Shown here piece by piece: positions 9,712 through 49,842 of a stretch of DNA of 64,000 nucleotides; positions within the stretch are counted from its first letter, which is position 1; each line of letters starts with the position of its first letter. A program made the translations under genes and the position numbers. The notes under the pieces are model-generated. The model saw only the letters and a program-made list of their open reading frames with translations, was not told the DNA's origin and searched no databases. Location of the stretch: positions 206,757 to 270,756 of IMG/VR virus record IMGVR_UViG_3300023049_000005; one strand, given 5' to 3'.

Positions 9712-11517
9712 TTAACCCATAGGTTTATTAAATTCTTGTACTTTTTTAATTATATCACGATCTTGTTCACTACCTTCACCTGTTAAATATGCTTCTAAGC
9801 TTGTATCAATTGTATATTTTTCTTCTGTGTATACTTCTCTTGGTAGCATTGTATAATAAATAGAATCGCCTTCTTTTCTACTTAACATTAACATCGTTAG
9901 ATCTAAGTTAACAGGATTTAAATGATCTTCTATCATAATCATAGGAGTGTCTTGTTTAGGCATTAAGTATTCTTCCCCATCAACTTCTTTCTTATTCGCT
10001 AAGAAGAAAAAATAGAAATTATCTGATTCCTTTTTAAGTCTACTACTATCTTTTATTAATTGAGATAATAATAAAGATATAGTAATAGTATCCTCACTAT
10101 TTGCGGCTTCTATTAATCTATCCCACCTTTTCTTATCATCAATATACATTTGTCTTAATTTTTCTTTATCCGCTCTTGATGTTGCTATCTTAGTATGAGA
10201 AACTAAAATAGTAGGATCTAAATCAATTAGTTTATAAAGTTCTTCATCAGTCAATTCTACACCATCATATAAACTGTGTTTATTAGTGATCATTTCTAAT
10301 TTTTGAGTAGAAGTAAGTTTAAGTGTTGCTTCTTTATAATATTCCTCTATATTACTTTCTAGTAAATCAGGATAGTTTATGATAGCATATATCTTTTGAT
10401 CCATGTTTAATGATTTAGCAACGGACTCGTGTTTACATACACGAACATCTGTCTTAATTAAATCAGTGATTTCTTCTGCCGTTAGGAAGTCTATATTATC
10501 ATATAGTCTAACTAATCTTGGGTATTTCATTAAGTACTTTTTCTTATCACCATCAGATAGATCGCTAAATAAATCTCCTGCGTATTCACTCATACTTTCA
10601 TTATCGGCTAAATACTTTATCTTTTGATAATCTTCTATTTCATTCCATTTTTTTAGATATTTGAAGTATCCTTCTTTTTCAAGATTACTAGCACTACTAT
10701 CATCCTTATAATGTGCTATATATTTACCATCTTCGTACAAAGTAATACCAACTTGTGATTGTACGCCCTCTTTTGTTAGATCCCAAATAAAGTATTGTAC
10801 CCCTGCCTTTCCACCACGAGTAAGATAACTACTCCAATAGTTATACATACTATCAGATATACACCATTGTTTAGACCCTAAGTTACATGAGCCTTCTTTT
10901 GAGAAAATCATAGCAATTAAATAATCATCTTCATCAAAGTATACTATTTGTGCATCTTGATCTTTTTTAATTTTCTCGAATATATCCTTTATATCTGCGA
11001 AACTTTTTAAGTGACCTGATAAGTAATTGAAAAAATCTTCAACAGGTCTATCCTGATACTTAGCAATCTTTTTTAAGAATACATTATTATAATCTTCGTA
11101 ATCATAATCTATAATAGCATCTCTGAATCTGTTAAAGTGTTTTTTATTGGATTTCAATTTTTGTCTAAGCGGATTTGGTATCTTTTTTAAATATTTATTT
11201 GTCTTTTCGATTAGATCTACTTCTGCTAATATATCAATAACATCTTCAAACTTCTCTGCTTCTGTTACATCTATATTAAACTGTTTGAACGTGTTTTTAT
11301 GATCAGTCATTTTCTTATATAAATCCTTTAATTCATCGTGATTTATCCCTTCTTCAGAGTGTATATCAAAGAAAAGAGGAATGTATTTTTGTTCCTTTCT
11401 CAAATAATCAAACGCTTTGAGTATTTCTTGGTAAGGTATTTCCCTACCTTCCTTATCTTTATATTCTCTTTTACTTTCGAAAATAAATTGTTCTAATGTT
11501 ATTATCCACTTTGCCAT
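9712..11517 (-). CDS. Tagged protein with conserved CxLGSxxWCI module (paralog 1 of 3)
   Basis: SCNLGSKQWCIS...QYFIWD...SQVGIT...AHYKDD; minus-strand TAATATATA at 11552-11560. Confidence 0.75.
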   Translation of the reverse strand: MAKWIITLEQFIFESKREYKDKEGREIPYQEILKAFDYLRKEQKYIPLFFDIHSEEGINHDELKDLYKKMTDHKNTFKQFNIDVTEAEKFEDVIDILAEVDLIEKTNKYLKKIPNPLRQKLKSNKKHFNRFRDAIIDYDYEDYNNVFLKKIAKYQDRPVEDFFNYLSGHLKSFADIKDIFEKIKKDQDAQIVYFDEDDYLIAMIFSKEGSCNLGSKQWCISDSMYNYWSSYLTRGGKAGVQYFIWDLTKEGVQSQVGITLYEDGKYIAHYKDDSSASNLEKEGYFKYLKKWNEIEDYQKIKYLADNESMSEYAGDLFSDLSDGDKKKYLMKYPRLVRLYDNIDFLTAEEITDLIKTDVRVCKHESVAKSLNMDQKIYAIINYPDLLESNIEEYYKEATLKLTSTQKLEMITNKHSLYDGVELTDEELYKLIDLDPTILVSHTKIATSRADKEKLRQMYIDDKKRWDRLIEAANSEDTITISLLLSQLIKDSSRLKKESDNFYFFFLANKKEVDGEEYLMPKQDTPMIMIEDHLNPVNLDLTMLMLSRKEGDSIYYTMLPREVYTEEKYTIDTSLEAYLTGEGSEQDRDIIKKVQEFNKPMG

Positions 11518-11576
11518 AATTAAAAAAAATCTTATATTTGTTCTTTAATACTATATATTAAATAAAATAGACACAA

Positions 11577-12044
11577 ATGAAAAGTATGACACAGTTAAAA
11601 TTATTTTCTCCTACACATTTCAAATTTAAGTTTGATATTGCGTTATCTCTTATTGTCCTATATTATTTAGTACTTCTCATATTTATCGGAGAAAAAGAAG
11701 TAAGAGATTACCTAATGGAAGGGACAAATATATTCTCTAGTTTAATTGGTGTCGTTATCTTAGTAAATGCTAAAATTGTAGACTTTTTTTCTTTTTTAGA
11801 AAACTTAAAAAAGGATTTGAGATATGATCTATGGATCAAATATAAAGATAACAAGTTATATAAGTTTATTAAGAAATCTTTTTATGGACTTATTGTGTTT
11901 AATACAATATGTTTATTGGTTTATTTGTATTTAATTTTCATTACTGATGATATTATCGATAAAATTTTGTATTTTTGTATCTCTTTAGTTACGATAATCG
12001 TACCTGGGATTGTTATTTATAGCTCACATTTAAAAATAAAATAA
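11577..12044 (+). CDS. Membrane protein
   Basis: Four hydrophobic segments; TATATTTG at 11533-11540. Confidence 0.65.
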   Translation: MKSMTQLKLFSPTHFKFKFDIALSLIVLYYLVLLIFIGEKEVRDYLMEGTNIFSSLIGVVILVNAKIVDFFSFLENLKKDLRYDLWIKYKDNKLYKFIKKSFYGLIVFNTICLLVYLYLIFITDDIIDKILYFCISLVTIIVPGIVIYSSHLKIK

Positions 12045-12045
12045 G

Positions 12046-12324
12046 ATGAAAAAATTATTACTAATATTCTCAACTCTACTGTGTGTCAGTGCTTATTCAC
12101 AAGTAGATGGTAAATACGGATCGGAAGGACTTTCCTTTCACACTCCCCAAAAAGATACCTTGTTTTTACAGAAAGGTCATTTAATTACACCCGATATCAT
12201 TAGGATATGGGAAACCGATAGTACTATTGAAGAAACTAAGCCTGTTATCATTACCCATACTAACATCGCTTATATTAGAGAACAAAGATTAAAACAATAT
12301 GGAATTAGAAAAGAAATTCGATGA
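12046..12324 (+). CDS. Small protein with signal peptide; C-terminal IREQRLKQYGI
   Basis: MKKLLLIFSTLLCVSAYSQ Sec-type signal with Gln at +1, typical of Bacteroidota. Confidence 0.6.
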   Translation: MKKLLLIFSTLLCVSAYSQVDGKYGSEGLSFHTPQKDTLFLQKGHLITPDIIRIWETDSTIEETKPVIITHTNIAYIREQRLKQYGIRKEIR

Positions 12325-13711: not shown

Positions 13712-14782
13712 ATGCTTAAAAATAATGAAAGAAAAATAAGAGTAGAATATATTTGGTTAGACGGTGGTACTCCACAGAAAATACGATCTAAGACCAAGGT
13801 TATGACAACTACTACTGACGATCTAATGACTATTGAATTATCTGATTGGAATTATGACGGATCTTCAACGAAACAAGCTGTAACCAATAATTCAGAAGTT
13901 GTAATTAAACCAAAAACAAGATTTAAAGATCCCTTCGGTGGTGACCTTTTAGTAATGTGTGATACATACAGCCCTGATGGTACACCACTTGGTGACAACA
14001 AGCGATACGAATTAGAGAAAATAATTGATATGGATCAAGAAACATGGTATGGTTTCGAACAAGAATATACTATGATGAACCCAACTTCGGGTAAGCCATT
14101 AGGTTTCCCTAATACAGAAGGATATTTCCCTGAGCCACAAGGAAATTATTACTGCGGAGTAGGCTATAATCATGTTAAAAATGGTAGAGAGATAGCTATG
14201 GAACATTTAGATAAATGTATAGAAGCGGGTATTAATATCAGTGGTGTCAATGCAGAAGTCATGCTAGGACAATGGGAGTATCAGGTCGGTCCTGTCCCTG
14301 CATTAGAGGGGGCAGATTCGATGTGGATGTCTAGATATATCCTTTATAGAATCGGAGAGAAATATAGTGTAGAAATGAATATCGAACCAAAACCCGTTAA
14401 AGGCGATAATTGGAACGGCTCAGGTATGCATGTTAATTTCTCTACAGGTGCTATGAGAGATAAGAAAAACATCGAAAGTGGTGAAAGTATCAAAATTATA
14501 GAAAGAGCCTGTGAGAAACTTTCTACGAAACATTCAGAACACATATCAGTGTACGGTGAGGGTAATGAAGAAAGACTTACAGGAATCAACGAGACTTCTT
14601 CTTATAAAGACTTTTCTTGGGCATATGGTAGTAGAGAAGTATCTATTAGAATACCAACTGCTGTTAAAGAAAGAAAGGTGGGATATTTAGAAGATAGAAG
14701 ACCATCATCTAACGGTGATCCTTATTTAATTTGTAGAAAGTTAATCCAAACTATCTGCAGCGAGAAAGAAGCGTATGCATAA
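13712..14782 (+). CDS. glnII: Glutamine synthetase type II
   Basis: EYIWLDG, WNYDGSST, GFEQEY, NAEVMLGQWEYQVGP, WNGSGMHVNFST, GYLEDRRPSSNGDPY; 356 aa is GSII size. Confidence 0.95.
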   Translation: MLKNNERKIRVEYIWLDGGTPQKIRSKTKVMTTTTDDLMTIELSDWNYDGSSTKQAVTNNSEVVIKPKTRFKDPFGGDLLVMCDTYSPDGTPLGDNKRYELEKIIDMDQETWYGFEQEYTMMNPTSGKPLGFPNTEGYFPEPQGNYYCGVGYNHVKNGREIAMEHLDKCIEAGINISGVNAEVMLGQWEYQVGPVPALEGADSMWMSRYILYRIGEKYSVEMNIEPKPVKGDNWNGSGMHVNFSTGAMRDKKNIESGESIKIIERACEKLSTKHSEHISVYGEGNEERLTGINETSSYKDFSWAYGSREVSIRIPTAVKERKVGYLEDRRPSSNGDPYLICRKLIQTICSEKEAYA

Positions 14783-16573: not shown

Positions 16574-17155
16574 ATGGAAGATACTACTAATAATGAAGTT
16601 ATTGATATGGAGATTAGGTATATGCACGATGAATACCTATCTTCACGTGAAAAGCTTATAGAAAGAAGAAAAGAAGCAGTTCAAAAAGTTATTTCAAAAA
16701 AAGAATATACATATAGAATAGAGGGGATTAATTATTATTATATGTTAGAATCGGGTGTCACACTGATTGTTAGAGCAAATGATAGTGATATATCACATAG
16801 TCTCAATACGGATAGAATATTACTTAAAGAAGAGAAGAGAGATATGTTTATCTCCTCTCTTCTAGAAGATGTTGATTCATTCACCGATAGTTTGATGAAA
16901 GACCTAAAAGAAATTGAATGGATGTATAATGAATTTCGTATGCTTAAAAATAATCTATATGAGGCTATTATAACCGAATTAAGAGATTGGGTAGATAATA
17001 CCTTTGATATATCATACTTACTTCCATTGGTTATTTCTATCGGGGAAACAAAGTATATTATTACCGAAAACGAAGACCGTGGAGATGCTGCTTATAACCC
17101 TAGTGAAAATAAAACCAAAATTGATCTGAAACCATACATAGAGTATTCACTATGA
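16574..17155 (+). CDS. Hypothetical protein (internal EKRDMFISSLL); paralog of 17152..17676
   Basis: Shared C-terminal pattern PLVISIGETKYIITEN / PYVINLGSIKYLLTKE. Confidence 0.65.
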   Translation: MEDTTNNEVIDMEIRYMHDEYLSSREKLIERRKEAVQKVISKKEYTYRIEGINYYYMLESGVTLIVRANDSDISHSLNTDRILLKEEKRDMFISSLLEDVDSFTDSLMKDLKEIEWMYNEFRMLKNNLYEAIITELRDWVDNTFDISYLLPLVISIGETKYIITENEDRGDAAYNPSENKTKIDLKPYIEYSL

Positions 17156-17676
17156 TAGAATTAGCTGAGATTTTCGAAGAAAATAAAAAGAAAATAAAGG
17201 ATCTTAAAAAGTCCATAGTCGATATACTCCTATCTAATAAAGAGTTGTGTTATGAAGTGAGGTATGATCTATATACTATATTAGTAAAGGATAACCACTT
17301 AGAACACATAGAAATAATAGGGGAATCTTTATGCTCAAGATATAATACCTTTTATAATGCTTATTTAGACCATGTAGTTAGGGATATGAAATTAAGCCTA
17401 TTGACAGAAGAACATAAGGTAGAATTTGCTAATGAGGTAAATCAGATGCTAATAAATTTAGATCTATTGCTTATAGAAACACAAACTATTAATGAAGGGA
17501 TAATTAGTAAAATAGTTACCCATCTTAATAGTAAATATAATACTATTGAAACACCATATGTTATTAACTTAGGTAGTATTAAATACCTACTAACAAAAGA
17601 AGAAATACCTCTTAGTGTAGATTATGTAATTAACACTGATTACAATTTAATTGAACATAGAGAAGAAATTATCTAA
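17152..17676 (+). CDS. Hypothetical protein (internal VRDMKLSLL)
   Basis: Tandem paralog of the upstream gene; ATGA overlap. Confidence 0.65.
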   Translation: MIELAEIFEENKKKIKDLKKSIVDILLSNKELCYEVRYDLYTILVKDNHLEHIEIIGESLCSRYNTFYNAYLDHVVRDMKLSLLTEEHKVEFANEVNQMLINLDLLLIETQTINEGIISKIVTHLNSKYNTIETPYVINLGSIKYLLTKEEIPLSVDYVINTDYNLIEHREEII

Positions 17677-17718
17677 TAAGTCTCTAAACTTTTTCATAGT
17701 TCTAGACTATATCTAGTA

Positions 17719-19152
17719 ATGAAAAAGGAAGATAAGATACAAGAGTTAAAAAGGAAAATTTCTCAACTCGACCAAGAGATTGGATATTATGATGCACTTC
17801 AACAAGGATTGAAGCTCGTACTTAACGGATCATATGGTGCTTATGCATCAAGTTACTTTGTCTTATTCGACAACAATGTTGCAGGCTCTATTACCGCTGA
17901 AGGTAGAGAGTTAACTAAAACTATGTCAGATAAAAATGAAGACTATTGGTATAACCAATGGCACTTAGATGAAGAACTACATAAAACCCTTTATATAAAA
18001 TATGTAGAACAAATTCCTAATACTAAACCCGTAAGTGTATATGGTGATACAGATTCAATTTTTGTTGGATTTGAACCTGCTATCGATAGCTGTGAATGGA
18101 AAGACAGGATATTTAACGACACATGGTTGAACAAGTGTCCTTATCCTTATATAGTAATCAAGAAAGGAGATACATTTGACCATAATATAAAGAATGATAA
18201 TTACAAAGGTGTCATTTATTTCAGAGATGAAAAATTATATATGAACGGAGAAGAAATAGAATCTATACCTGAAATAAAACTATTAGCGATAGATGGTTCT
18301 TTAATTAAAGATTATAAGTTCATACCATATCTAAAAGAAGTTAAGAGTAAAACAATATACAATTGGGGAACTGAATTAGAATTCATGCACGGTTTAGATC
18401 ATTTTAAAATAGCTGCTTATTTTAAAGATGAGTTAGACAAACATGCCCATAGTTATGGCGTAGATAACCTAGAAGATTTTGAGTTAGAAAAGATTTCTGA
18501 ATCTATTATCAACTTAGAGAAAAAGAAATATATCCAACATATTACTTGGGAAGAAGGAATTAATTATGAAAGATTAAAATACTTCCAACCTAAGGGTGTT
18601 GAATTGATTAGATCATCTACTCCACAATTTGCGAGAGATGAAGATATGGGTATATACAAAGTAGTTAAATATTTATTTAACCATCCTAGGGATTTCAATA
18701 TACAAGAACTTACTGAAATAGTAAGAGGAATGAGAACAGAATTTGAACTTGCAGATATAAATGATATTAGTGGACAATCTTCTTGTAGTAATTATGAGAA
18801 AAAAGTACTTAATGATAAGGACGCATTAGAGTTTGTATCAGGTGCGCATTTTGGTGTTAAGGCTGCAGCATTCCATAACTACTTATTGAACCAAAGAAAA
18901 GAATTACAGACTAGATATGAATTCTTGAAATCAGGCGATAAGATCAAGTATTATTATACTAAAGATCCGATTAATCCTATTTTTGGTTTTAAGAGAGGGG
19001 AATACCCAATTGAGTTTGGTCCTGATGTGGATTATGACACACAATTTGATAAAGTAATTCTAAGTCCTATTAATAATATTATTAAGAAACTTGGTATGCC
19101 TGAAATTAATAAGAGGTTAAGTGTGTTAGTAGATATATTTGCTAATCTTTAG
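17719..19152 (+). CDS. polB: Family-B DNA polymerase, C-terminal subunit of a split enzyme
   Basis: Motif B KLVLNGSYG, motif C YGDTDS, KKKY, KGVELIRSSTP. No exonuclease domain or motif A; begins in the fingers. AAAC-N18-TATATC at 17686-17713. Confidence 0.9.
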   Translation: MKKEDKIQELKRKISQLDQEIGYYDALQQGLKLVLNGSYGAYASSYFVLFDNNVAGSITAEGRELTKTMSDKNEDYWYNQWHLDEELHKTLYIKYVEQIPNTKPVSVYGDTDSIFVGFEPAIDSCEWKDRIFNDTWLNKCPYPYIVIKKGDTFDHNIKNDNYKGVIYFRDEKLYMNGEEIESIPEIKLLAIDGSLIKDYKFIPYLKEVKSKTIYNWGTELEFMHGLDHFKIAAYFKDELDKHAHSYGVDNLEDFELEKISESIINLEKKKYIQHITWEEGINYERLKYFQPKGVELIRSSTPQFARDEDMGIYKVVKYLFNHPRDFNIQELTEIVRGMRTEFELADINDISGQSSCSNYEKKVLNDKDALEFVSGAHFGVKAAAFHNYLLNQRKELQTRYEFLKSGDKIKYYYTKDPINPIFGFKRGEYPIEFGPDVDYDTQFDKVILSPINNIIKKLGMPEINKRLSVLVDIFANL

Positions 19153-21536: not shown

Positions 21537-22376
21537 ATGATTACAGTAAAGGTATTAACTGCAGACGAATTCCGTGAGATAACTAAAGAGAAAGATAGAA
21601 TAAGATATTTCGATTATGCTGATCTATCTAGGAAAAAGAAAAAACACTTCATTACTCTTTTAGATAATAATAAAATAATAGGTGTTTGTCATATAGCAGA
21701 GTTTGAATATGATACTGATTCGGATATGTCTATTGTTTATTTTTCGATAGATCCTGAATATAGAGGAAAGGGATATACTACTTTAATGGCTGATAAGTTA
21801 ATGGAACTTTGCAAAAAAGAAAATATTGTATTGGGAACATCTTCTTGGACAGTGCCTGGTTTTAACAGACTGAGATCTACTATACAAAAATATGCAAATA
21901 AACATAGAGTTAAATTTGTAGATAATAATGAGTTGTTTGATAGACCTTGGATGTATAATTCTAAAATGAAACACACACGAGATATGACCGAAGAAGAAAA
22001 GAAAGAATATGAGAAGTTAAGGAAACTTAAATACGTAAAATCATTTAATATTTTTGATTATAATACAGGATTGTATAAGATATATGCTACACAAACAGAT
22101 TTCGATTTCAATAAAGTAGATTATTTCTATGATATAATAGATAAAGGAGAATATAGGTTCTTTTCTAATGAAGGGAAGATAGCGGGTTATTTTGTTAACA
22201 ACAAGTATTATATTTCAGAAGGACACCACAGAATGTTAGCTGCGTTAAAATATTGGAAGAAACATAATGATTATTCGGTTGTAGATAAACTGATCAAGAA
22301 TGGTCTTATCACACCAAAAGATAAAGTGCCTAATAACTTCTATAAAAAATTTCCTATTAAGAAGCTTTTTTCATAA
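21537..22376 (+). CDS. GNAT acetyltransferase fused to ParB-like domain
   Basis: IDPEYRGKGYTT acetyl-CoA motif, then internal KLKYVKSFNIF tag, then ISEGHHRMLA. Confidence 0.7.
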   Translation: MITVKVLTADEFREITKEKDRIRYFDYADLSRKKKKHFITLLDNNKIIGVCHIAEFEYDTDSDMSIVYFSIDPEYRGKGYTTLMADKLMELCKKENIVLGTSSWTVPGFNRLRSTIQKYANKHRVKFVDNNELFDRPWMYNSKMKHTRDMTEEEKKEYEKLRKLKYVKSFNIFDYNTGLYKIYATQTDFDFNKVDYFYDIIDKGEYRFFSNEGKIAGYFVNNKYYISEGHHRMLAALKYWKKHNDYSVVDKLIKNGLITPKDKVPNNFYKKFPIKKLFS

Positions 22377-23313: not shown

Positions 23314-23358
23314 ATCGTTTTAGTTTGTTTTACAAATATAATAATAAATATATAGAGT

Positions 23359-25788
23359 ATGAAATTTATTTTACAGAAAGAAAATTTACAACAAGCAAGA
23401 AGTATATTAAAAAAATTAGATATCACAGAAGATGATGTTAGATTCAAAGACCTCAAAGAATATTACGAAGAAAGATTAGGTAATAATTGGGGGTATTTTG
23501 GTTTCTTAACTAATCTTATTTTTAAACAAGGTGAGCATTTAAGTTCAGTTAAAAAGTTAATAGATTTCATTGTTGATGATAAAGATATCATAAAGAGTTT
23601 ACCAAAAAACATAATTAAATATACTAGTATAGAAAAGATATCAGATGATATTACTATACAATTGGAATGGAGAAAATACAGACAAGAATTCGTCAATGAA
23701 CTTTCGGGTAAAATAAAAACACTAGCTAAAAAAGATGAAGATCTTAAAAACGAATACATTAATAGTGATGAAAATACTAAGAAAGATATTTTACAAAATT
23801 TCATTCCTAAAATAGCTAGATATACGGACTATAGAAAATTTAAATCAGATCTAAAATCATTTTTGAATAAAACAGATGATATCGAAACCATTATTAAAGA
23901 TATTAAGAATCAAGAACACGCATATTTAGTATACAACGAAAATAATGTTGTTATAGCGGAAATATATAAATATGAAGCATCTTGTAAATTAGGATCTAAA
24001 GCATGGTGTATATCTACGGAAAAATTCCATTGGAATGATTATGTCAGTGGTATGAATAAACAATATTTTATTTGGAATTTAAATGTTCCTAAATCAAGTA
24101 ATGAAAGTCAAGTAGGTGTTACAATAAAGGAAGATGGTACAGTAAGAACTGCTCATTATAAAAATGACAAAAGAGCATCTATTGAATTATATTTAACTAA
24201 ATATAATATACCCACCGAAGTACTTACTCCTATTGATATAAATAAAGATTTTAGTAAATTAGAAAAAGCAGACCGTTTAGATGAAGGCGTATTCACTAAT
24301 CTGATAAAAAGTGATAACAAAGAACTTATTAAAAAATATTACGATATTATACCAAATAGATTAAAGATTAAATATAATTTATATAATGAAGAAGAATTAA
24401 GTAAAATGAATTTATCTGATACTACTAAAGAAGTACTTAGTTCGGATAACAGTAAGATTAAAAGAATAGTTAATTATCTAAGTCTTGAAGAAATTCTTAA
24501 TTCTGAGGAAAGAAAATTCGTCGATAAGATGACATTCGTCGATAAAATATATTTTCTTAAAAAAGCGATGACACTTAATTTAGACTACGGTAGTGATTTC
24601 CATGAATCTAATATAACAGAAAAGTTGTTTCCTAATACTGATGTATATACCATAGACTTTGATGAAGAATTAATTTATGTTAAAGGGGAGGAGAAAGATC
24701 AATTTTTTGATGAATTTCTTGGTATGTATACTGAGACATACCATCATTTAAATTCTATCACTACACATAGTAGTATGTATAGTGATACAGAGGAAATTAA
24801 TTTTTGTTATAATGCTCTAACGTCTGACCAAGGGTTAGAATTTATGGAAGTTTTAGAGTTCTTAGAAAAGAATTCATACCACGAAAAACTAAAAGAATAT
24901 TTCACAAAATTTATTAAGACGTATACTGATAATAATGGGATTGAATATTATGACGTTGAATCATTTTTCTTAAAAGTAGGTTTAAAAGAAGTGTTCGAAG
25001 TATTAGAATTATGTTCTAGTGCAATAGAAGAAGGCGCAGATCAATATATCTCAGAAGATATGCAATTATTTTCTGACCTAGAAAATAAGTTTGATTTTGA
25101 TAGTTTTAATATCGGAATAGGTATTCCAATAGATTTAATTATTGATTCATTTGATGATAAGGAATTAACAGACGAAGGTTTTGATTATGATAATTGGGTT
25201 AATAACACTCCGTTATCTAATCAAGTTCCTGCATTTAATTCAGAAGAGGGAACTTATGAATATTATAGTATGGCTCAAGTATCAGAAGAATATAAAGAAA
25301 AAATTGATAATCAATTAGAAAAATTAACAAGTGATCTTGAATTTGAATTAGCTGAATTTTTAGAAATGAATAACGAAAAAGTACATAATGCTTTAATTGA
25401 CAATGGATATGTTGGTGATACAGAAAGTGGTTGGCAATATGAAGAATTCTTTTTTTATAGAAAAACCAAAGGTGATATAGTTAGTATCATACCAATAGAA
25501 AGTATCATAGAAAACGGTAATGCCGTAATGTACATAATGGAAACTAAAGTTTTTAAGGAAGAATTACGCATTCTTAAAAATATAAATATAGTTACTGATG
25601 GTAGTGAGGAAAAACCAAATAGATGGGGGAGTAGTGAAAAAGAGCTTAATAGTAAAAACATCAATGTTAAACAGATTAACATCTTTGATCGCTTTGAAGA
25701 AAGAACTAAAGACCCTAACCAACTTAGTCTATTTGAAGAAAAGTTAATAATTAATTTCAAAAAGTTTAAACAAAGGAAGAGTATTTAA
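23359..25788 (+). CDS. Large protein with CxLGSxxWCI module (paralog 2 of 3); C-terminal QLSLF
   Basis: ASCKLGSKAWCIS...QYFIWN...SQVGVT...AHYKND; AAATATATAG promoter-like motif upstream. Confidence 0.75.
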   Translation: MKFILQKENLQQARSILKKLDITEDDVRFKDLKEYYEERLGNNWGYFGFLTNLIFKQGEHLSSVKKLIDFIVDDKDIIKSLPKNIIKYTSIEKISDDITIQLEWRKYRQEFVNELSGKIKTLAKKDEDLKNEYINSDENTKKDILQNFIPKIARYTDYRKFKSDLKSFLNKTDDIETIIKDIKNQEHAYLVYNENNVVIAEIYKYEASCKLGSKAWCISTEKFHWNDYVSGMNKQYFIWNLNVPKSSNESQVGVTIKEDGTVRTAHYKNDKRASIELYLTKYNIPTEVLTPIDINKDFSKLEKADRLDEGVFTNLIKSDNKELIKKYYDIIPNRLKIKYNLYNEEELSKMNLSDTTKEVLSSDNSKIKRIVNYLSLEEILNSEERKFVDKMTFVDKIYFLKKAMTLNLDYGSDFHESNITEKLFPNTDVYTIDFDEELIYVKGEEKDQFFDEFLGMYTETYHHLNSITTHSSMYSDTEEINFCYNALTSDQGLEFMEVLEFLEKNSYHEKLKEYFTKFIKTYTDNNGIEYYDVESFFLKVGLKEVFEVLELCSSAIEEGADQYISEDMQLFSDLENKFDFDSFNIGIGIPIDLIIDSFDDKELTDEGFDYDNWVNNTPLSNQVPAFNSEEGTYEYYSMAQVSEEYKEKIDNQLEKLTSDLEFELAEFLEMNNEKVHNALIDNGYVGDTESGWQYEEFFFYRKTKGDIVSIIPIESIIENGNAVMYIMETKVFKEELRILKNINIVTDGSEEKPNRWGSSEKELNSKNINVKQINIFDRFEERTKDPNQLSLFEEKLIINFKKFKQRKSI

Positions 25789-27043: not shown

Positions 27044-27088
27044 TTGACATACTTACTTATTTAATATATAATTAAAATCGGATATTAA

Positions 27089-36000: not shown

Positions 36001-36661
36001 ATTCTCACTACCTAAATTAAGTATAGGGCAAGCCTATAACGAATATTTTGAAAATATTAATTTAGGTGGAACAAGTGGTTATATATCATCTTATGATAAT
36101 GATATGGTCGGATTTATTGATGGGACAAAATTAAGTGAGATAAATAATTTTGGAAATATTGGTGATACTAAACGATTAACCATGAAGTCATTTATGTATA
36201 ATAACTTTGGTGGGTATAGAGATTCAGTGAGAGTTATAGAAAAGGGCTTTAATGTTGATATAGGTTCAACCAGTAGCGAATATACAGTTAATTCTCCAAT
36301 TTATTATAAATTTAATCATTATGAGATAGATAAAATTCCTTTTTATGATTATAGAAGTTATATTGATCCATTAAGTGGTGAGGTAACAGATTGGAATATG
36401 TTAGCAAACCAAGATCAAACTAGAAAAATAGATGATAGGATTAAAACACCTTTCTATGCTTCTTCTGTTCCTATTAATTATCAAGACTCTAATTTTGTAT
36501 TAACTGATAATATAAATTTCTTAGGTGGTTCTAATATAACAGGTAATGTGATTATTGAAGAAGTAGATACATTATCAACAGCTACTATACAAGAATTATT
36601 AGATTTACTTGCTGCTAATAAACAATTTAATTTTGGTGGTGGTGGTCCTCAATCATTATAA
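27089..36661 (+). CDS. Giant (3190 aa) probable virion structural protein with WxNGxFxNG pentapeptide-like repeats
   Basis: Late promoter at 27062-27070; many WxxGxFxxG repeats; N/S/T/G-rich; no Cys seen in the translation. Confidence 0.65.
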   Translation: MSNSIQETYSSALVNYSEPRTINGVHYTRFYTEFNTELSVGDFVYILNGNYDNTDLLNINEYQQGTTGYEVLEIDRNSITLDILYRDEDPWNEDPFADYTKVYLVDNIQKFNYENIDNSFGFEGQSGDKYSIFNNNVFLSQIEDMEYTQETGTNQRFFKSFFDPERTLGMVDMRGQLFNDSTELKFDLEELTEYSLVEPNGASGSTYARFSSGQNNIRDFDIVTQVDYSTDEIIERLISLNSSNSATNTVNLWTLNKNTLDGIGDVTLRNSLNTEDVSANIVSPFIKKDGLGAFSGSLIDIRLPKYSGSTYNYISSQSGGAILGNTSRTYTLRDINQTVIVGYDDPTFENNYRAFGFYNSSDLLSDKFISPDSQDDSWTIANGQGYIDGNTQSTPYFALSSGLTGSYNYTGDFVFPQRQIGGFRVYGNIVPPYAEYSGIGRAVQIETNTWNNSVEDSTHHELVFAGTGLTSSVDPLQGGAYFYSYGGVWRDYDSIYNGNKMLGNAFELSKTTFDEYKTGSWSQSSFNPFGDFDDYPFADLKDIKFLGYEKKDFGLNIYYDSAGTPVNTFSALTFALPTFGGIGGGETFALPSEFESNGVYYSRYLVITESGTSYIINLLFNSVLLAVNTDFLTDMQNGLPQVHVVIQEIDTDLSQPTEIGVQRNLNVFDFPELIGGDYPIVSIYGTHSYYDPISGTFSGFDFSDINISTIDFSDQRWLIGSSELSPRLSNSSLLSTDANQGVYVFDRSINDTTYEFSITTTTEFDTGDTLPSNKIYKILGEVINNKRRVWVATNTGLFMFDYDLAYTFDYYFRVNFDDNEIELDESLYKNDRLYVMEEFTYDGRLFEKDKIYRHLKDEKRWVRDTTYERSYLTKAHMKDGTILEGVFNDGIFGNKNTVANWEGATWRNGIVYNVDWDSGTMSSKSDIILRQNYYATLDNSKVKISTDFTNNEGYGYNLVNFSTLKTGDVLNGTILNTTIGLTVSSRLLDDTYNGLSFSYNDLEIVRSKIENSTTNAIQLGNSMVSRSDLNSTFVNDAQLINNNVYDSIINDATIENQGNIKILGYEKWFNIRTKTEQQDILQIHKFFINEKDFSKLSYEDWVVFNNVQLSNNNPSNILDRLFYVLGGADGYYQDVYEDLNRIFNNKYRENNFKIFISKRLETQNRQRTNIRYNGVQLVVDTAENESPMYSIDLNIVTNEIPYNSDSSIYLNALENDGILKVNATNISKAVLQNYHFKNSWINGGTWLNGSMIQPDQLNSLYNYGSVSSTTNSVTVDLYDNNYEIKSSDILDNEVVHINNIWDSNFLTYSGGDFMIVSGTTSRVLEPYGDFATNATLSVPMSQYTTLNLNRIDGVNNNLSIVSGVFKNQSFSNLSIQNEELDVRNLNYQNIRNLMVINSEITKRDNLEIQDIFLGYGHVSNDFTSKEEFGLDLISYKQTLTNVNVFDGIVTKSAFISGTFSDGIFTNNRYRDINDLIPINNRTYAPTQSAVISSWHFGNFLNGEVSDSTWLNGTFSNGIFLNSEFLGGIWSNGEFGDISGRPTLNLFRKGLWLNGAFNNGIFGDDDKEVGTINSIYTNNKYILESNIYTKEGTNIWEKGNFNNGVLTSINNNVTIWRDGKFNNGKVSGSVIWYDGIFNNGKYSSRYGRQVANVAGEVDLLSLADSSLADGSRTLNLNGITASFPFLDQYSIASIRDINANNPNLFDNAGTIVLDTSDNQLKFGYVSSTTSNTVLDPFDTNLSSHGFTEKAADDFFTGTISNLYMQFKPLDYEAIGTSVHPLKNANILGAKIFVQDTSNEYIYDGSSYVTQSNFLSATISGTSLTFSSYYSWRNGVFNNGEFGLADNPNNINPSWENGTFNGGVFNGKVWKNGTFVKGKFNGSGTNQLQTSSTNIFKGYDPQASIEEYIDDYSLSFIAAQNQGQGSYKVILDKYDWYGVWLNGEVSPNISGLSVVLSNLESAVSNVTPNLSFGLESAFAPSATNTSVSNALSNNSGLLTNTSVLSSPVRENILVEYFNEDKYNRRINKRPIFDKMIWVNGIFNNADGEFNESVWLSGTMKNGTFRNSMFNPYVQRWDFETGDLNNIEFKFDLDTENTIWENGTFDSGIFFFSDWENGTFENGVMMGGNFKAGRANYMSAYSSIWEGGRFRNGNWFGSNFTFDNIYNDPSIPNPFEYLRNYFANVQFAPFVTDILGNNSKRLQDDRLHIWNIIEGDITNSVYNITGHSFGTDSGSQIINNGTVDVNNTYSFTDISTSPASGIYRLELSISQTPIVFSTYDYIVNFTLVDQKRYDEGVYEITFYTDGNIWSPIPIVNSTVFELYADIYENGILIEPDVLLKQIPIGSYKNVRKTFEVLENQEYVLKIEARMSVDNGTYTESYYLAIEEVVAEVVYSNKNNDLEGSIELNWEGSYLNSTASTASASLTYTNTLSLEDTIRYTGLDVSTISIPTVYKDYSSAYSQFGNGTFQSGIFENGIWNNGYRGTEYGLYIIEDGDVYPGATLSYVHLGGSSSIVETNPLYSDVPQVKYRTEPIVYFNRVQRSFKVGRRRWRFVLESAFDIDAANNTEEYNRLRVSDQVSISNIIAIDINGNRKLIKDVFRIIRIPSRTRIVVEYQETFPIDSIQIDSDRHLIAVSKNVWFNGAFLNGYFKGNMINGFVRGNRNITKIEDSQLIDVDFQGGHFVSKKYTLSSIFDTRTSNSLSLSPQFTEKYNSLYHSGLIQNMTFDDDVTLTNYGLYSTEGVKINGNGIGDPKNVTFGATAVSEALQYIYNSDMDLVYEPEYYSSVFNQNIINTHAINELEIGEFIPTKLYNIPAGYITYDVLNSVSNFKYSTEPNNIEGVIEYKLSLGSKYKIFNDLFNVDFSQSPNNDPDIDAPSTFNIVESATYGIFRQGSISNGINFNQLESQFIHEDFMYIFDTSSNVTEKITGNNTFKLRNRYHLVEVDVEFTNKTVPNPYVITNTVTIGTTYSYGTFSLPKLSIGQAYNEYFENINLGGTSGYISSYDNDMVGFIDGTKLSEINNFGNIGDTKRLTMKSFMYNNFGGYRDSVRVIEKGFNVDIGSTSSEYTVNSPIYYKFNHYEIDKIPFYDYRSYIDPLSGEVTDWNMLANQDQTRKIDDRIKTPFYASSVPINYQDSNFVLTDNINFLGGSNITGNVIIEEVDTLSTATIQELLDLLAANKQFNFGGGGPQSL

Positions 36662-44183: not shown

Positions 44184-45350
44184 ATGAAATTTATTAAACC
44201 TAGAAGTGTTAACGAAAGTAACTCTATGGAATCTATTATACCTGATTCTATATGGGAACTAAATTCTATTTTCCAAAAAGAAGGACATAAGTTATATGTC
44301 GTTGGTGGAGCAGTAAGAGACTTTCTTAATAATGAAAAACCAAAGGATTTTGATCTAGCTACAGACGCAGAACCACAGAAGGTAATTGATATGTTGAAAC
44401 CTCATTTTAAAGTTAAGGATGAGGTACAAGGTGTTGACTTTGCTGTTGTGGTAGTTTACACAGAAGACGAACCCGATGGAATGGAGATTGCTACTTTCCG
44501 TGAAGACGTATACGGAGATAAACTTGGTAAGACAAGAAATCCTGTTATTAAATTTACGACTATTGAAAAGGACGTGGAAAGACGTGACTTAACCTTCAAT
44601 GGTCTGTTCTTCGATCTAGAAAAGAAAGAAATAATTGACTTAGTAGGTGGACAGAAAGATCTAGAAAATAAGATTACTAGATTTGTAGGTAAACCCGCAG
44701 ATAGAATAATTGAAGATCCACTTCGTATATTAAGACTATTAAGGTTTACTACTAGGTACAACTTTACTATTGAAGAAAAAACTGCTAATGCTATTAAAGA
44801 AAATGGTCACACACTTTCTATTATCACTAAGGAGAGAATTTGGGATAGTAAAAATGGTGAAGTTGTTAAAGCCTTCAAGCAAGCGAAAGACTTTCAGGAT
44901 TACGTAAACTACGTAACGGCTTTTGCGTTATGGGATAATATACTTCCTAATCTTGAAATTAATTCTGAATTAAAGAGCCAAATCAACTTACCTATTGTTG
45001 TTGTTCAATTAGTAAAAGGTAATAGTATTAAGAGTGTTCAGAAGAACCTCACTAAAAGTAAACTATCTACTGATTTAATTAATCAAGTAGTTTTTATGTT
45101 GAAACTATTAGATTTCAATAAAGAAGATATACTTAAATTCCATAGCGATAAAGTAAGGTCTAAGACGGCTGATGATACTATTGAAGAATGGATCAAGATC
45201 AATGGTCTAAAAGGTGATGTTTTAAAGTTCACTAAATTCGTTCCTACTGTTAGTGGAGAAGAAGTGATGAAAAAATTTGATATGAAACCTAGTAGAGAAT
45301 TAGGCGATAAGATCAAGGAGTTGGAAGTTATTAATTTCGAAGCTCTTTAA
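44184..45350 (+). CDS. cca: CCA-adding tRNA nucleotidyltransferase (class II)
   Basis: VGGAVRD, KDFDLAT, EIATFR, RRDLTFN, EDPLRILRLLRF, ERIW; N-terminal extension MKFIKPRSVNES. Confidence 0.9.
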   Translation: MKFIKPRSVNESNSMESIIPDSIWELNSIFQKEGHKLYVVGGAVRDFLNNEKPKDFDLATDAEPQKVIDMLKPHFKVKDEVQGVDFAVVVVYTEDEPDGMEIATFREDVYGDKLGKTRNPVIKFTTIEKDVERRDLTFNGLFFDLEKKEIIDLVGGQKDLENKITRFVGKPADRIIEDPLRILRLLRFTTRYNFTIEEKTANAIKENGHTLSIITKERIWDSKNGEVVKAFKQAKDFQDYVNYVTAFALWDNILPNLEINSELKSQINLPIVVVQLVKGNSIKSVQKNLTKSKLSTDLINQVVFMLKLLDFNKEDILKFHSDKVRSKTADDTIEEWIKINGLKGDVLKFTKFVPTVSGEEVMKKFDMKPSRELGDKIKELEVINFEAL

Positions 45351-45754: not shown

Positions 45755-45828
45755 ATGTATATTTTATAACAAATAGAATTAAAGTAGAGTTAAGAGATAG
45801 AGCTTTAAATTCTGTTACCCCAAATTGA
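45755..45828 (+). pseudogene. Collapsed remnant of a C-terminally tagged gene
   Basis: ATG TAT ATT TTA TAA (MYIL*, like MYVIL at 45352) out of frame with ITNRIKVELRDRALNSV. Confidence 0.45.
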
Positions 45829-48800
45829 ATCGGCTTTAGGTGTTCCTCTGTAAGCACCAACCTCAAATTTAAATGGTTCGCCTTTCAGATTAACTTCTAA
45901 TTCGTGTGGTAATTGTTTAAAGGTCTCAATAGATTTATTAGTATCTATTTGGTTAGGTTTTAAATACCCCTTAATTATATAAGGTAATTCCCCTTCTGTC
46001 TCTTCTAACGAATCATAGAAGTTGGATAATTGATCAAATTCTAAACACCAATGCTCACCTAGTTCTTTATCATCCAAATCAGATATATTATCTAAGAATA
46101 CTAATCGATATACTTCACCACCTTTTTTATTTAAGGTTTTAATCATATTGTTATAGTATTCCCATTCTTCTTCGGCTCTATCACCATCTTCGAATTCACT
46201 TATAAACCTTTGGTCTAATTCTTCTTTAATGAAGTCTGAATATTTTAATACAACAGATTCATTAGCTTCTCTAGGTATAAATTCATATAACCTATCGTTT
46301 AATCTTTCATTATAGTCTTCATAATCATTATCATCAAAAGAAACATAATTATTGTCACCTGAATCGGGGCTAAATTTTCCTTCCGCTTCTGTATAAGCAT
46401 TAAACATATTAGATACTTCAAATTCTTCTAATCCACTATAATCTCTTAGATTACTTAAGAAGTATTCGTTATCACACATTTCCCATATATCGGGAATCAC
46501 TTCAATGCCACCGTTAGTATATTTTATTAAACTATTATTTTTGAAATATTTTAATATTTTGTCTAATTCATTAATAGTATTATCAAACCATTTTGATCCT
46601 TGTGCATCTGCCTCAGTTTGACTATATGCTCCATTAATTGCGTCTATTATCTGATCTGCTTCGAAATCATCATAAAAATCTTCATCCTCTGTTTCATAAT
46701 CTTCCTTTAAAACTGATTCTATATCATTTCTTAATTGTCTTAATTCTGCGTCCTCGCTGTATAACTCTTGTGATTTTTTATAACTATAACTTGATTCTGT
46801 GTATTTATCAATAGCTGAGGTATTTATGTCTAATCCATCACTTTTTATTATAGATATTATATCTCTTAAATTATGAACTGTAATCTCATCAAATATACCA
46901 CTTTCTTCAAAATAATTAAAATCATTATGCCACGCATCAAACATATCATAATAATTCTCTAAAGAAAAGTTCATACCACTACTATCATATAGATCCTCTA
47001 AATCAGATAATGTTGTTTCGTATACCCACGCTTCTTCTTCCTTATCATAACTCATACCAATATTTTCATAAAAGACTTTGTTGTATTTAGTATCATGGTA
47101 TGCTAAAGATAGTAGAGCAAAACTATTACCTTCTTCTAAATATTTCTCTAATAATTCTTCATTATTTGCTATACTATATCCTATTAGTTTAACTACGTCT
47201 AAGTCCTCTGTATGGTCTTCATAATATAGTTTGTCACATAAAGTATCCATACTAGTTTCATTTAAATATTTTACAATTTGTGTATCTAATCCTATATTAT
47301 TTTTATTATACTTACTAAGGATAACTTCGTCTTTTTCGCCTGCCCAAGTAGTTAATACTCTATGTAGATTATCTGAGATATAATCTAACTGATCTTCTTC
47401 ATCATCATTTACCATTAAATATTCCCTTTTAATTAATCTATCATATTTATTGAAAAAAGAATAATAATCACCAAATGTTTCAAATGTTTTAACTTCATCA
47501 AATAATAACTCTAATAATTCACCTAAGAACATCTCTATTTCTTTTTCGAAATCATTTACAGTAGGTTTAGAAGGCATCTTGTTATAGATGTCAGATTGGT
47601 TAAAATATTTTTTCATTCCGTTAAGACCAACTTCTTTGTTATTAATCATATCATCTATCTGTTCTTGTATTTTAGGAAAATCATTAATGTCTTTTATGTT
47701 AACAATATTATCTTCTACTACTAATTTTCTTAACTGTCTAGCACTAGCATTAGACTTTACCATTTTAAGAATCACTATAATAGTAAATAGTTCTTTAATA
47801 TTATATTCTTCTTTTTTGTGTGCTTGTAATACCATACTTAGATCCAATACTAACCAAGAGAATATATACTCATTAGAGATTACATAATTTAATAATTCTT
47901 CTGTTTCTGATATAGCTTTAAGATCGGTTATAACTTTTGTTATAACTTTCCTATCTATCTTAAATTCATTAGATACGTCTCTGATATATGGATAAACTTC
48001 TTTATCTAACTTATTTATCTGTTTAATAATTCTATTTATCTCAGTTAAATCTTCTTTGTTTGATAGATACTCAGCTAATGGTTTTGTTAATTCCTTTGAG
48101 GCTATTAAGTAAAACATATCCTTATCGAATAATTTAACCGCTTCTTCTGTTTTAATTAACATAGATAAGAATTTAGGTAACTCTCTACTATTGGCTACTT
48201 GTTCAATGTTTAACATTTTCTCATATTGTTCAGATGTCAATAATTTCATATCTTCTCTGAACTCTAAGGACACAACAGACTTTTCATAAACTTCATAAAG
48301 TTTACTGTTTCCTTTTTCTAAAATATCATAAAACGCTTCGAAGTTTCTTTTACTTAACATATTATATGATGATACATATATCTCTTGTCTAGGTGAATCA
48401 ACTACTCCCGACTTTGTAACAAAGTCTATTAGTATTAAGTAACCACCATTATTCCCTGTTAAATATTCTAATATCCTTTGTTCTAAATTAGAGCTAAAAT
48501 AAAAATATGATAATACTAGTTCTAAGAATTCAACACCTATCTCTTCTGTAACTTTATGTGCGCTTATTATTTCGTATGTGTTGAATATACTTTTTAAACT
48601 TTTACCCTTAGATTCAAATCCTAAGGCATTAAAAAACAATGCTGCGTCTGTTGCGTTTTCTAATTCCTTTAAACCTTTCAATAATCCAATTAAATCATTA
48701 TAATAGAATAAAGAATTGAATAATACTTTACTGTCTTGATTATCCTCTTGGAAATATTTAAGGCTTTCTTTTGGTATGTTCACTTCTATGTCACCTATTT

Positions 48801-49842
48801 TCATTGGTTCATTTAGCTTTTCAATAGTCTTAGCTATACCATTATTCTTAGCAAACTCTATCATATCTAAAGTACCACTATTGATTTTATTATAAATTTC
48901 TTCATATTTGGATTTTAATGATCCTTTTGGTATGTCTGTCATATCATATATCCTATTTAAATCAACGGCATTATTATTTTTGTTCTGTGATCCACCATGT
49001 AAGGTTTTACCTTTAGGGTCAATAGTAATCCCAAATTCTGAGTTAGGGTTAGATGCGGGTAAGTTAAAGTTGAATATGAAATATTGTGTATTATATTTAC
49101 TTTTATCTAAATAACTATCATAATAATTATCGCTATATACTATACACCATTTTTCTGAACCTAAGTTACACACGTGTTCCTTATCACTTGTTTCTATGGC
49201 TAATATGTTATTCTGATTATATACGATATTAATATCATGTTTCTTTACGTATTCTAATACTTCTTTCTTTCTCTCATTAACATCGGATTTATTAATAAAT
49301 TTATCTAATGTATCTAGAAACTCACTGATCGAAATATCATTCTTTTCGAAATATTTCAAAGGTGTGAATAGTTTTTTGTAATCTTCTTTTAGATCCATAA
49401 AAGACAATGCAAGTTGGTTGAACTTTTCCATTCCTTCTTCTCCTAATCTATCTACTTCACTTCTCATACTACTGTATAAAGATTTGTAGAATTTTTTAAT
49501 CTTAATTTGATCTTCAAGTTGTACTATATCATCTGATATTTTTTCTAAACTATCATATTGAATTAGGTTCTTAGGAAGTTGTTTGGATATGTTTTTGTTT
49601 TCTTTATACCACTCTATTATTTCTCTAGCTTTTTCTAAGGCTCTCTCTTTGTTTTCTTCTTGGAAAATTAGTTTTGTAAAAACATAAACTAAGTTCGGGA
49701 ACTTTTTAAGTAGTTCTCTAATAGCCTCAAATATTACACTGTTGTCTTGATCGACATCAATATTATATTCCTTCTTTAAAAAAGATTTTGCTTGTTTTAT
49801 ATTCTCTTTAAGTAAATATGTGTTTTTATCTAAGATAAACAT
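45805..49842 (-). CDS. 1345-aa multidomain protein: CxLGSxxWCI module (paralog 3 of 3) plus C-terminal ART-like domain
   Basis: VCNLGSEKWCIV...QYFIFN...SEFGIT; internal NESVVLKYSDFIKEE, then VYR...LGEHWC...HELEVNL. Confidence 0.7.
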   Translation of the reverse strand: MFILDKNTYLLKENIKQAKSFLKKEYNIDVDQDNSVIFEAIRELLKKFPNLVYVFTKLIFQEENKERALEKAREIIEWYKENKNISKQLPKNLIQYDSLEKISDDIVQLEDQIKIKKFYKSLYSSMRSEVDRLGEEGMEKFNQLALSFMDLKEDYKKLFTPLKYFEKNDISISEFLDTLDKFINKSDVNERKKEVLEYVKKHDINIVYNQNNILAIETSDKEHVCNLGSEKWCIVYSDNYYDSYLDKSKYNTQYFIFNFNLPASNPNSEFGITIDPKGKTLHGGSQNKNNNAVDLNRIYDMTDIPKGSLKSKYEEIYNKINSGTLDMIEFAKNNGIAKTIEKLNEPMKIGDIEVNIPKESLKYFQEDNQDSKVLFNSLFYYNDLIGLLKGLKELENATDAALFFNALGFESKGKSLKSIFNTYEIISAHKVTEEIGVEFLELVLSYFYFSSNLEQRILEYLTGNNGGYLILIDFVTKSGVVDSPRQEIYVSSYNMLSKRNFEAFYDILEKGNSKLYEVYEKSVVSLEFREDMKLLTSEQYEKMLNIEQVANSRELPKFLSMLIKTEEAVKLFDKDMFYLIASKELTKPLAEYLSNKEDLTEINRIIKQINKLDKEVYPYIRDVSNEFKIDRKVITKVITDLKAISETEELLNYVISNEYIFSWLVLDLSMVLQAHKKEEYNIKELFTIIVILKMVKSNASARQLRKLVVEDNIVNIKDINDFPKIQEQIDDMINNKEVGLNGMKKYFNQSDIYNKMPSKPTVNDFEKEIEMFLGELLELLFDEVKTFETFGDYYSFFNKYDRLIKREYLMVNDDEEDQLDYISDNLHRVLTTWAGEKDEVILSKYNKNNIGLDTQIVKYLNETSMDTLCDKLYYEDHTEDLDVVKLIGYSIANNEELLEKYLEEGNSFALLSLAYHDTKYNKVFYENIGMSYDKEEEAWVYETTLSDLEDLYDSSGMNFSLENYYDMFDAWHNDFNYFEESGIFDEITVHNLRDIISIIKSDGLDINTSAIDKYTESSYSYKKSQELYSEDAELRQLRNDIESVLKEDYETEDEDFYDDFEADQIIDAINGAYSQTEADAQGSKWFDNTINELDKILKYFKNNSLIKYTNGGIEVIPDIWEMCDNEYFLSNLRDYSGLEEFEVSNMFNAYTEAEGKFSPDSGDNNYVSFDDNDYEDYNERLNDRLYEFIPREANESVVLKYSDFIKEELDQRFISEFEDGDRAEEEWEYYNNMIKTLNKKGGEVYRLVFLDNISDLDDKELGEHWCLEFDQLSNFYDSLEETEGELPYIIKGYLKPNQIDTNKSIETFKQLPHELEVNLKGEPFKFEVGAYRGTPKADSIWGNRI

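Follow-up and report, generated by a model that had tools for sequence, protein, structure and literature searches.

Three long open reading frames (ORFs) dispersed over a 64,000-nt window of a freshwater jumbo phage genome encode proteins that begin alike and end differently. Are they carriers of exchangeable payloads or old paralogs, and what might their common part do? The window, by which we mean the whole stretch of DNA analysed, comprises bases 206757-270756 of a linear virus record of 270,756 bp (IMGVR_UViG_3300023049_000005), which has a CheckV completeness of 89% and a G+C content of ~29%. Near-identical DNA occurs in lake-water metagenomes. An earlier note, made from the letters of the window, had described the three ORFs as a carrier or enzyme module with swappable payloads, like polymorphic effectors. 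We are highly confident of the descriptive part of the answer: the homology of the module, its limits and invariant residues, the old orthologous tails and the PcfJ-like fold of the core.

A shared N-terminal module and its tails

ORFs were translated with table 11, and all three ORFs in the window are open, at 601, 809 and 1345 aa. P0001 (601 aa) lies at 9712..11517 on the minus strand, P0002 (809 aa) at 23359..25788 on the plus strand and P0003 (1345 aa) at 45805..49842 on the minus strand. In a three-way alignment, the first ~280-310 residues align, with 22-32% identity to the first sequence. The module comprises aa 1-~310 of P0001 (nt 10588-11517, minus), aa 1-~307 of P0002 (nt 23359-24279, plus) and aa 1-~308 of P0003 (nt 48919-49842, minus). 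Its second part is an α/β core, which spans aa 171-299 of P0001 (nt 10621-11007), aa 172-296 of P0002 (nt 23872-24246) and aa 186-308 of P0003 (nt 48919-49287). The core contains the triplet W-C-I at aa 218-220 (nt 10858-10866), aa 216-218 (nt 24004-24012) and aa 232-234 (nt 49141-49149), respectively, each on the strand of its gene. The invariant columns, in P0001 numbering, are V192, Y193, C211, L213, G214, S215, W218, C219, I220, Y231, Q241, Y242, F243, I244, S254, G257 and T259.

A six-frame search of the whole genome together with a local hidden Markov model (HMM) search identified exactly one further copy, an 897-aa protein encoded in the same genome outside the window (G000:C1:82243-84936, plus strand), ~13 kb upstream of the portal, protease and capsid genes. 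This fourth paralog has a Gln at the first Cys of 'SCxLGS' and a coiled-coil-like tail with 26% Asp plus Glu. According to pairwise blastp, similarity was confined to the N-terminal ~280-300 aa, with E values, obtained against a small database, of 3e-12 to 3e-27 among the three window copies and of 4e-10 to 6e-30 when the fourth copy was included. By contrast, blastp of tail against tail gave no match among the paralogs. All four tails are acidic, with isoelectric points of 4.3-4.8; that of P0001 (4.8) is unannotated.

These results bear out the earlier note in its description of a shared N-terminal region with a common motif, of unrelated C-terminal halves and of a helical 'EKISDDI / EDVIDIL' stretch, which is present and contains two residues conserved family-wide (E92 and D96 in P0002 numbering). 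The proposed motif CxLGSxxWCI holds in its W-C-I part, which is invariant, but not in the first Cys of 'SCxLGS', which the fourth copy replaces. The set of three paralogs is real and is enlarged by the copy outside the window.

To delimit the family, we used a profile of the module in an exhaustive search of 1.84 billion cluster representatives (clusters at 50% identity), since a word-index protein search gave 3 relatives only. The profile recovered the paralogs at E 1e-87 to 1e-124 among these 1.8 billion proteins; the homology of the module is therefore far beyond chance. The family numbered 2,362 proteins at E ≤1e-3, 1,491 at ≤1e-10 and 272 at ≤1e-30. Of the best 153 proteins, whose total lengths range from 215 to 1,554 aa, 142 have a module that begins no more than 40 residues from the N-terminus. 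Several copies per genome also occur elsewhere, with three in a 634-kb phage and two in a 642-kb phage. A few relatives, namely P0008 (1,554 aa), P0066 and P0138, have an internal module or two module matches and are probably fusions or tandem duplications.

The tails of the family were then compared with the phylogeny of the module. Clustering of 145 tails of at least 100 aa, taken from the top 150 representatives, yielded 33 groups. Each of the four largest groups (40, 28, 19 and 17 members) holds one paralog of this genome, the largest being the P0003 type with 40 representatives, while the P0002 and P0001 types have 19 and 17. Within a tail type, similarity reaches the very C-terminus, down to 20-40% identity. 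We mapped tail type onto a FastTree phylogeny of the N-terminal module, built from every row with 220 or more residues (152 in all) and containing one branch noted as long (P0066). Each tail type fell on one side of a branch, and tail type changed 3 times, which is the minimum; shuffled labels gave a mean of 53.6 changes, and none of 200 shuffles was as low.

A related lake phage carries orthologues of the 601-, 809- and 897-aa proteins in matching neighbourhoods, with tails that are 63-86% identical. The shared neighbours are an M28 peptidase and an AAA gene for the 601-aa protein (orthologue P0010), 408-aa and ~3,190-aa genes for the 809-aa protein, and a gp32-like gene, which adjoins the orthologue of the 897-aa protein. 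Congruence of the tree, orthology of the tails and synteny therefore identify these genes as old paralogs in which each tail was inherited together with its module. The four genes are thus ancient paralogs and not swapping cassettes, and it is well supported that the tail of each type predates the spread of the types through a broad clade of large phages.

Across the family, the picture of a carrier holds in part. Many unrelated tails follow a conserved N-terminal module whose Trp-Cys is invariant, as the survey of C-terminal diversity suggested in the earlier note revealed in its 33 groups. A Pfam search of 61 representative tails found ankyrin repeats in 5 of the 61 and no other domain, and clusters of ESM-Atlas and BFVD join the module to ankyrin, leucine-rich (LRR) and WG repeats. 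In these respects, the proteins resemble MuF-type and other polymorphic toxins, in which a conserved N-terminal part and diverse C-terminal parts also occur in a large family and in a phage setting. They differ in that the tails are inherited vertically and in that the N-terminal module is unrelated to MuF. None of the 61 tails contained a toxin domain known to Pfam. Moreover, neither orphan tail cassettes nor immunity-like small genes were met beside the three genes, in an analysis that made no search aimed at them. Recombining payloads, the other half of the earlier proposal, are not in keeping with these results.

Conservation and predicted fold of the module

Among 153 representatives, and in P0002 numbering, W216, C217 and I218 are conserved in 100%, Y228 in 99%, D96 in 97%, G253 in 96%, G212 and Q235 in 95%, E92 and T255 in 93%, S213 in 88% and H266 in 66%. 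In sequence order, the Cys is followed by His266 and then by Asp270, both of which are kept in the 601-, 809- and 897-aa types. The 1345-aa type lacks His266 in 34 of 40 representatives (mostly Gly or Gln instead) and has Asn for Asp270 in 39 of 40, yet retains W-C-I and the conserved Tyr, Gln, Gly and Thr. Either the activity of this type has been changed or lost, or the His and Asp are non-catalytic.

A model of P0002 residues 1-310, predicted from six sequences, comprises 11 helices (residues 2-183) followed by the α/β domain, with a predicted local distance difference test score (pLDDT) of 78.7. The helical bundle carries the conserved acidic pair E92 and D96. The core, residues 172-296, was modelled from a 150-sequence alignment with a pLDDT of 92.2 and a predicted template modelling score (pTM) of 0.87; its elements are ordered α-β-β-α-α-β-β-β-α-α. 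In this model, Cys217 opens a short helix (model residues 46-49) after the Gly212-Ser213 loop. Such a placement is the usual setting of a nucleophilic cysteine of low pKa, and Cys217 may thus provide a reactive thiol.

At the level of fold, the nearest known relatives of the core are PcfJ proteins (PF14284), whose type is PcfJ of Enterococcus faecalis plasmid pCF10. Three independent lines agree on this placement. First, 28 of the 30 nearest named clusters of ESM-Atlas by language-model features carry PF14284, at scores of 0.91-0.92. Second, Foldseek searches of the core against the predicted viral models of BFVD returned uncharacterised members of the phage family first (top E 9e-8, template modelling (TM) score 0.79). 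At least 13 PcfJ-annotated proteins stood among the top 50, at E 1.3e-3 to 0.15 and TM scores of ~0.5; their probabilities were mostly 0.9-1.0, with a few weaker, in comparisons in which both sides are predicted models. Third, hhalign gave the same register with two PcfJ profiles, with WCI aligned to HCV, the conserved Tyr and Thr each to its counterpart, and strands to strands. The invariant residues of the PcfJ alignment (H43, C44, Y50 and T76) have counterparts in W216, C217, Y228 and T255, which are 93-100% conserved in the module. Of the folds named in the earlier note, the PcfJ-like one has thus become the best lead. A GNAT-like fold, its other suggestion, was not accepted for the core: Foldseek found no solved structure at E 1e-3 or better. 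A sequence search of the PDB with the core gave no match.

The module and PcfJ have in common a small α/β domain whose elements come in the same order, a helix that begins with aromatic/His-Cys-(Val/Ile) and is followed by a conserved Tyr and a conserved Thr on a strand, and an occurrence in phages and mobile elements, often within long multi-domain proteins. Unlike PcfJ, the module has its Cys preceded by Trp rather than His, and a Gly-Ser loop stands where PcfJ has 'EG..L'. In canonical PcfJ proteins, the domain is C-terminal, whereas here the core is N-terminal, placed after a conserved 180-aa helical domain and before the long tails.

At the level of sequence, several observations speak against membership in the PcfJ family. 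The hhalign P values, 0.15 with a 7-sequence PcfJ profile and 0.062 with a 57-sequence profile (PcfJ of pCF10 and 56 others), were not significant. PF14284 did not match any of the four full proteins at E up to 1-5, nor did a six-frame search with it, at E up to 10, return anything from this genome or from two huge phages; and PcfJ was not among the families listed in a Pfam scan of 150 core sequences. A search for PcfJ at E ≤1e-8 in the 301 genomes of a single phylum yielded few sequences, with matches in 3 of them. On balance, the predicted core shares the PcfJ fold and probably represents a remote offshoot of the PcfJ superfamily, outside PF14284 as that family is defined.

Phages and conjugative plasmids often encode PcfJ-like domains, which are without assigned function and figure sparsely in literature that names PcfJ together with phage. 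On pCF10, pcfJ lies beside genes for AcrIIA9-family and DpnD/PcfM-family proteins, and the plasmid also encodes ArdA. A PcfJ-like domain has also been described upstream of regions diversified by diversity-generating retroelements (PMC5758913). For the module of the present work, no publication that describes it was found, and searches of Pfam, PHROGs and NCBIfam with full proteins, cores and tails returned noise and ankyrin repeats only. It fits best within the uncharacterised PcfJ-like fold, as a large new variant that these three resources miss. What emerges is a very large division of that fold, present in multiple copies and overlooked by current family models, together with a high-confidence structural model in which one Cys is absolutely invariant. 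The fold is also linked to leads on virion carriage, ADP-ribosylation and the sliding clamp.

Possible virion carriage, tail leads and rival readings

One distant relative of the module is known from virions. EST35_0205 (QCG76086.1; UniProt A0A4Y5JTQ7), a 482-aa protein of the 287-kb, T4-related jumbo phage PA5oct, is annotated as 'structural protein, ESI-MS/MS' (electrospray ionization tandem mass spectrometry), and its gene sits in a run of structural genes detected by mass spectrometry (MS). The virion proteome of PA5oct comprises 93 particle-associated proteins (PMC7318152). Among 338 PA5oct ORFs, EST35_0205 was the best match to an HMM of 153 module sequences (E 3.7e-8). The matches were collinear, with the helical part followed by the core, and Foldseek matched it to the core with E 2.5e-3 and a TM score of 0.56. 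A standard genome search of PA5oct with the module alignment or PF14284 did not recover it.

As in the four types, the module of EST35_0205 is N-terminal and an unrelated tail follows; the protein has G-K-G-T-R-W-C in place of G-S-x-x-W-C. It differs from the four types in having Thr for Ile after the Cys and a tail unrelated to theirs, and PA5oct encodes one clear copy only. EST35_0205 is a true, if distant, homologue of the whole module. A second ORF of PA5oct (182 aa; MK797984, 172979-173527, plus strand) matched the module HMM weakly (E 4e-4 among 338 ORFs) and may encode a stand-alone PcfJ-like protein.

The present phage has T4-type head machinery. Its genome encodes a gp21-like S77 protease (PF03420, 30.8 bits) and a gp23-like capsid protein (PF07068, 102.5 bits). 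PHROG matches include a head maturation protease and a portal, a baseplate hub is also present, and a gp13-like neck gene was assigned via synteny. Because a PA5oct homologue occurs in purified virions and this phage has such machinery, we infer that its module proteins may be carried in the virion. Like T4, this phage thus combines a gp23-type capsid protein with a gp21-type head protease, and the 1345-aa type recalls T4 Alt and 'polyvalent' proteins as a long multi-domain phage protein with a candidate ADP-ribosyltransferase (ART). Unlike T4 Alt and Mod, it has no sequence similarity to the models of those proteins, and its candidate ART lies at the far C-terminus.

That candidate is the C-terminal ~130-aa domain of P0003 (aa ~1216-1345; 45808..46197, minus strand), which may be of the R-S-E type. 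In 9 orthologues, GG-x-x-YR (R1246), LG-x-HW, LSNFY (S1273), PY-x-I and LP-x-ELE-x-NL (E1314, E1316) are invariant; R, S and E-x-E are spaced by 27 and 41 residues. By language-model features, the nearest named clusters (0.82-0.92) are DUF4765/EspN, DRAT, ADPrib_exo_Tox, NarE and Mod_ADP_RT, and most neighbour clusters are ART families. The domain had no Pfam match (E up to 5-10) and no sequence match in the PDB. An ART-like end, which had been noticed in the first reading of the window, is accordingly supported by conserved motifs and language-model neighbours but not by Pfam or PDB sequence searches, and is a lead to possible ART activity.

In P0002, the 'QLSLF' noted earlier is present at aa 788-792, within DPNQLSLFE (aa 785-793; 25711..25737, plus strand), a clamp-binding-like motif conserved among orthologues. 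The 19 P0002-type representatives mostly have DP[ND]QL-x-hydrophobic-x-[FL]E some 20-25 aa from the C-terminus. QLSLF itself occurs in P0002, P0005 and P0016, while QLEFKF, QLKFKF, QLELQF and the like occur in most others, always after DP[ND]. The motif fits QL[SD]LF / QLxLxL, which we take to be the consensus of the penta- and hexapeptides that bind the bacterial β-clamp. No phage-encoded clamp was detected with PF02916 or PF02768.

In complex predictions, P0002 residues 745-809 scored 0.58 with E. coli DnaN vs 0.00 for the best control; the clamp of the real host may differ. Agreement between runs covered at least 56% of contacts, with a partner pLDDT of 41 or more. In calibration, 51 of 78 solved complexes reached the mark, as did 2 of 108 mismatched pairs; scores of ≤0.60 were given by only 5 of the 78 solved complexes, yet by all 4 passing mismatches. 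These predictions weakly suggest that the tail peptide of P0002 may bind a sliding clamp.

We tentatively, and with more doubt than assurance, read the four genes as encoding virion-carried multi-domain proteins whose tails aim them at host targets. In such a scheme, the module, a helical domain plus a PcfJ-like Cys domain, would perform a common job, and the type-specific tail would set the target, with the Cys domain acting as a shared catalytic or a shared docking unit. The proteins would be made for the particle, would enter the host with the DNA and would act early, by analogy with T4 Alt or the 'polyvalent' proteins. The candidate means of targeting would be the ART of the 1345-aa type, the clamp-like peptide of the 809-aa type and, in other members, binding scaffolds of ankyrin, LRR or WG repeats. 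A bolder version is that the module is an undescribed Cys-dependent unit, conserved in more than 2,000 protein clusters, and the common chassis of virion-delivered host-takeover proteins, among them an ADP-ribosyltransferase, a binder of the sliding clamp and target binders with ankyrin or LRR repeats; this version is unlikely. If it were true, working it out would provide a first function for the PcfJ superfamily, in phages and conjugative plasmids alike; and should the module prove an enzyme or a delivery adaptor, a good part of the large 'hypothetical' proteins of huge phages would be accounted for.

Several findings count against virion-borne host takeover. The evidence for virion carriage is a single distant homologue in another phage family, and no other experimental result bears on the module family. 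Since the 1345-aa type mostly replaces His266 and Asp270 while the Cys is invariant, a classical Cys-His-Asp triad cannot be the universal mechanism. A 10-nt sequence that precedes all four genes is no marker of a late or structural class, because helicase and homing-endonuclease genes share it. Nor was any RNA run among those listed as containing near-identical DNA. Finally, a clamp-binding tail would be no less suited to a part in replication inside the cell than to one in the virion.

The N-terminal tip of the module was also considered as a capsid-targeting peptide. The tip, [FY]-L-L-x-E-N-[ILV]-x-Q-A-[KR], comprises residues ~5-20 within predicted helix 1, and its Glu is present in 129 of 131 sequences. 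T4 capsid-targeting and cleavage sites end in hydrophobic-x-Glu, which the tip resembles. A peptide common to head proteins was rejected: no convincing ORF outside the family has it in this genome, which likewise counts against the virion reading.

The foremost alternative, although improbable, is that the proteins are intracellular enzymes or adaptors that never enter the virion, with a Cys domain that acts, for example, on DNA, the replisome or host complexes and tails that recruit it, to loaded sliding clamps through the clamp-binding-like peptide and to particular proteins through ankyrin or LRR repeats. The DP[ND]QL-x-hydrophobic motif conserved in the 809-aa type, the weakly positive clamp prediction in a phage with no clamp detected, and an invariant Cys that opens a helix would all suit such proteins. 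So would the location of the genes outside the head-tail block, among those of replication and nucleotide metabolism (DNA polymerase B, gp32-like protein, CCA-adding enzyme). Against this stand the distant homologue in PA5oct, a virion protein encoded within a structural gene run, and the very large tails, of up to 1,035 aa, that lack an enzyme signature. The clamp test, moreover, is weak, and E. coli is surely not the real host.

Decidedly less probable is a purely structural role, in which the module would anchor four different accessory proteins at a common position in the particle, be it the head interior, the neck or the baseplate, and the Cys would be non-catalytic. The PA5oct homologue is annotated as structural and flanked by structural proteins detected by MS. 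A shared N-terminal part in several proteins of one genome recalls the fibre and spike adaptor families of Rak2-like and CBA120-like phages, and the 10-nt sequence also precedes the protease, neck and baseplate-hub genes. However, a W-C-I conserved in 100% of sequences, along with near-invariant Tyr, Gln and Thr at ~30% identity, points to chemistry or ligand binding and not to packing alone. The tails are acidic, and the repeats recognised in tails elsewhere in the family (ankyrin, LRR and WG) are binding scaffolds of an intracellular type and not fibre folds; the ART-like end of the 1345-aa type also speaks against a structural role. Were the module a structural plug only, this would be an ordinary paralog family.

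Polymorphic effectors in the strict sense, in which a conserved carrier exchanges its payloads by recombination as in MuF-, Rhs- and contact-dependent inhibition (CDI)-type systems, are very unlikely and, for the four types, largely refuted: 33 tail groups on one N-terminal module, the repeat fusions and a candidate ART at one end recall them, but a module phylogeny fully congruent with tail type, tails conserved end to end, syntenic orthologues and the lack of toxin domains speak against exchange.

Upstream sequence and genomic setting

The 10-nt sequence, [AT]AATATATA[GA], has 87 copies in the genome, of which 66 lie within 120 nt upstream of the start of an ORF on the same strand. Most upstream copies have exactly 13 nt from motif start to ATG. 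This placement leaves a 3-nt spacer, without room for a Shine-Dalgarno sequence, and the element is probably a phage promoter that yields nearly leaderless mRNAs. The T4 late promoter TATAAATA is absent upstream of the paralogs and is not enriched in the genome. In the window, the copy before P0002 (AAATATATAG; 23346..23355, plus strand) starts 13 nt before its ATG, that before P0001 (TAATATATAG; 11551..11560, minus strand) lies 43 nt upstream of its start and that before P0003 (TAATATATAA; 49864..49873, minus strand) 31 nt upstream. A further copy at 27062-27071 (plus strand) precedes a giant ORF of 3,190 aa.

P0002 heads a conserved three-gene string with a 408-aa ORF (25817-27043, plus strand) and the giant ORF (27089-36661, plus strand), with gaps of 28 and 45 nt; the string is kept in the related lake phage L006. 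The giant protein had no Pfam or PHROG match. Its only relatives in deposited phages are from uncultured huge phages of 634-735 kb (LR756502, LR745206 and LR756501/3/4), the best two sharing 28% identity with it across 53-62% of its length. More generally, the closest deposited relatives of the genes examined come from uncultured huge phages of 634-735 kb, and megablast with 10 kb against cultured and deposited phages gave no match.

Among the auxiliary genes near the paralogs are those for an AAA ATPase (7285-8412, minus strand), an M28 peptidase-like protein (8448-9428, plus strand), a protein with a glutamine-synthetase catalytic domain (13712-14782, plus strand), a GNAT acetyltransferase (21537-22376, plus strand) and an enzyme of the CCA-adding/poly(A) polymerase family (44184-45350, plus strand). 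The region 16574-19152 (plus strand) contains a 477-aa ORF for a family B DNA polymerase, which matches the C-terminal part of the profile only (positions 488-840 of PHROG 262), with two short ORFs upstream of it. In a relative, a NUMOD-type homing endonuclease gene directly follows the polymerase, and the polymerase gene of the present phage may be split or interrupted.

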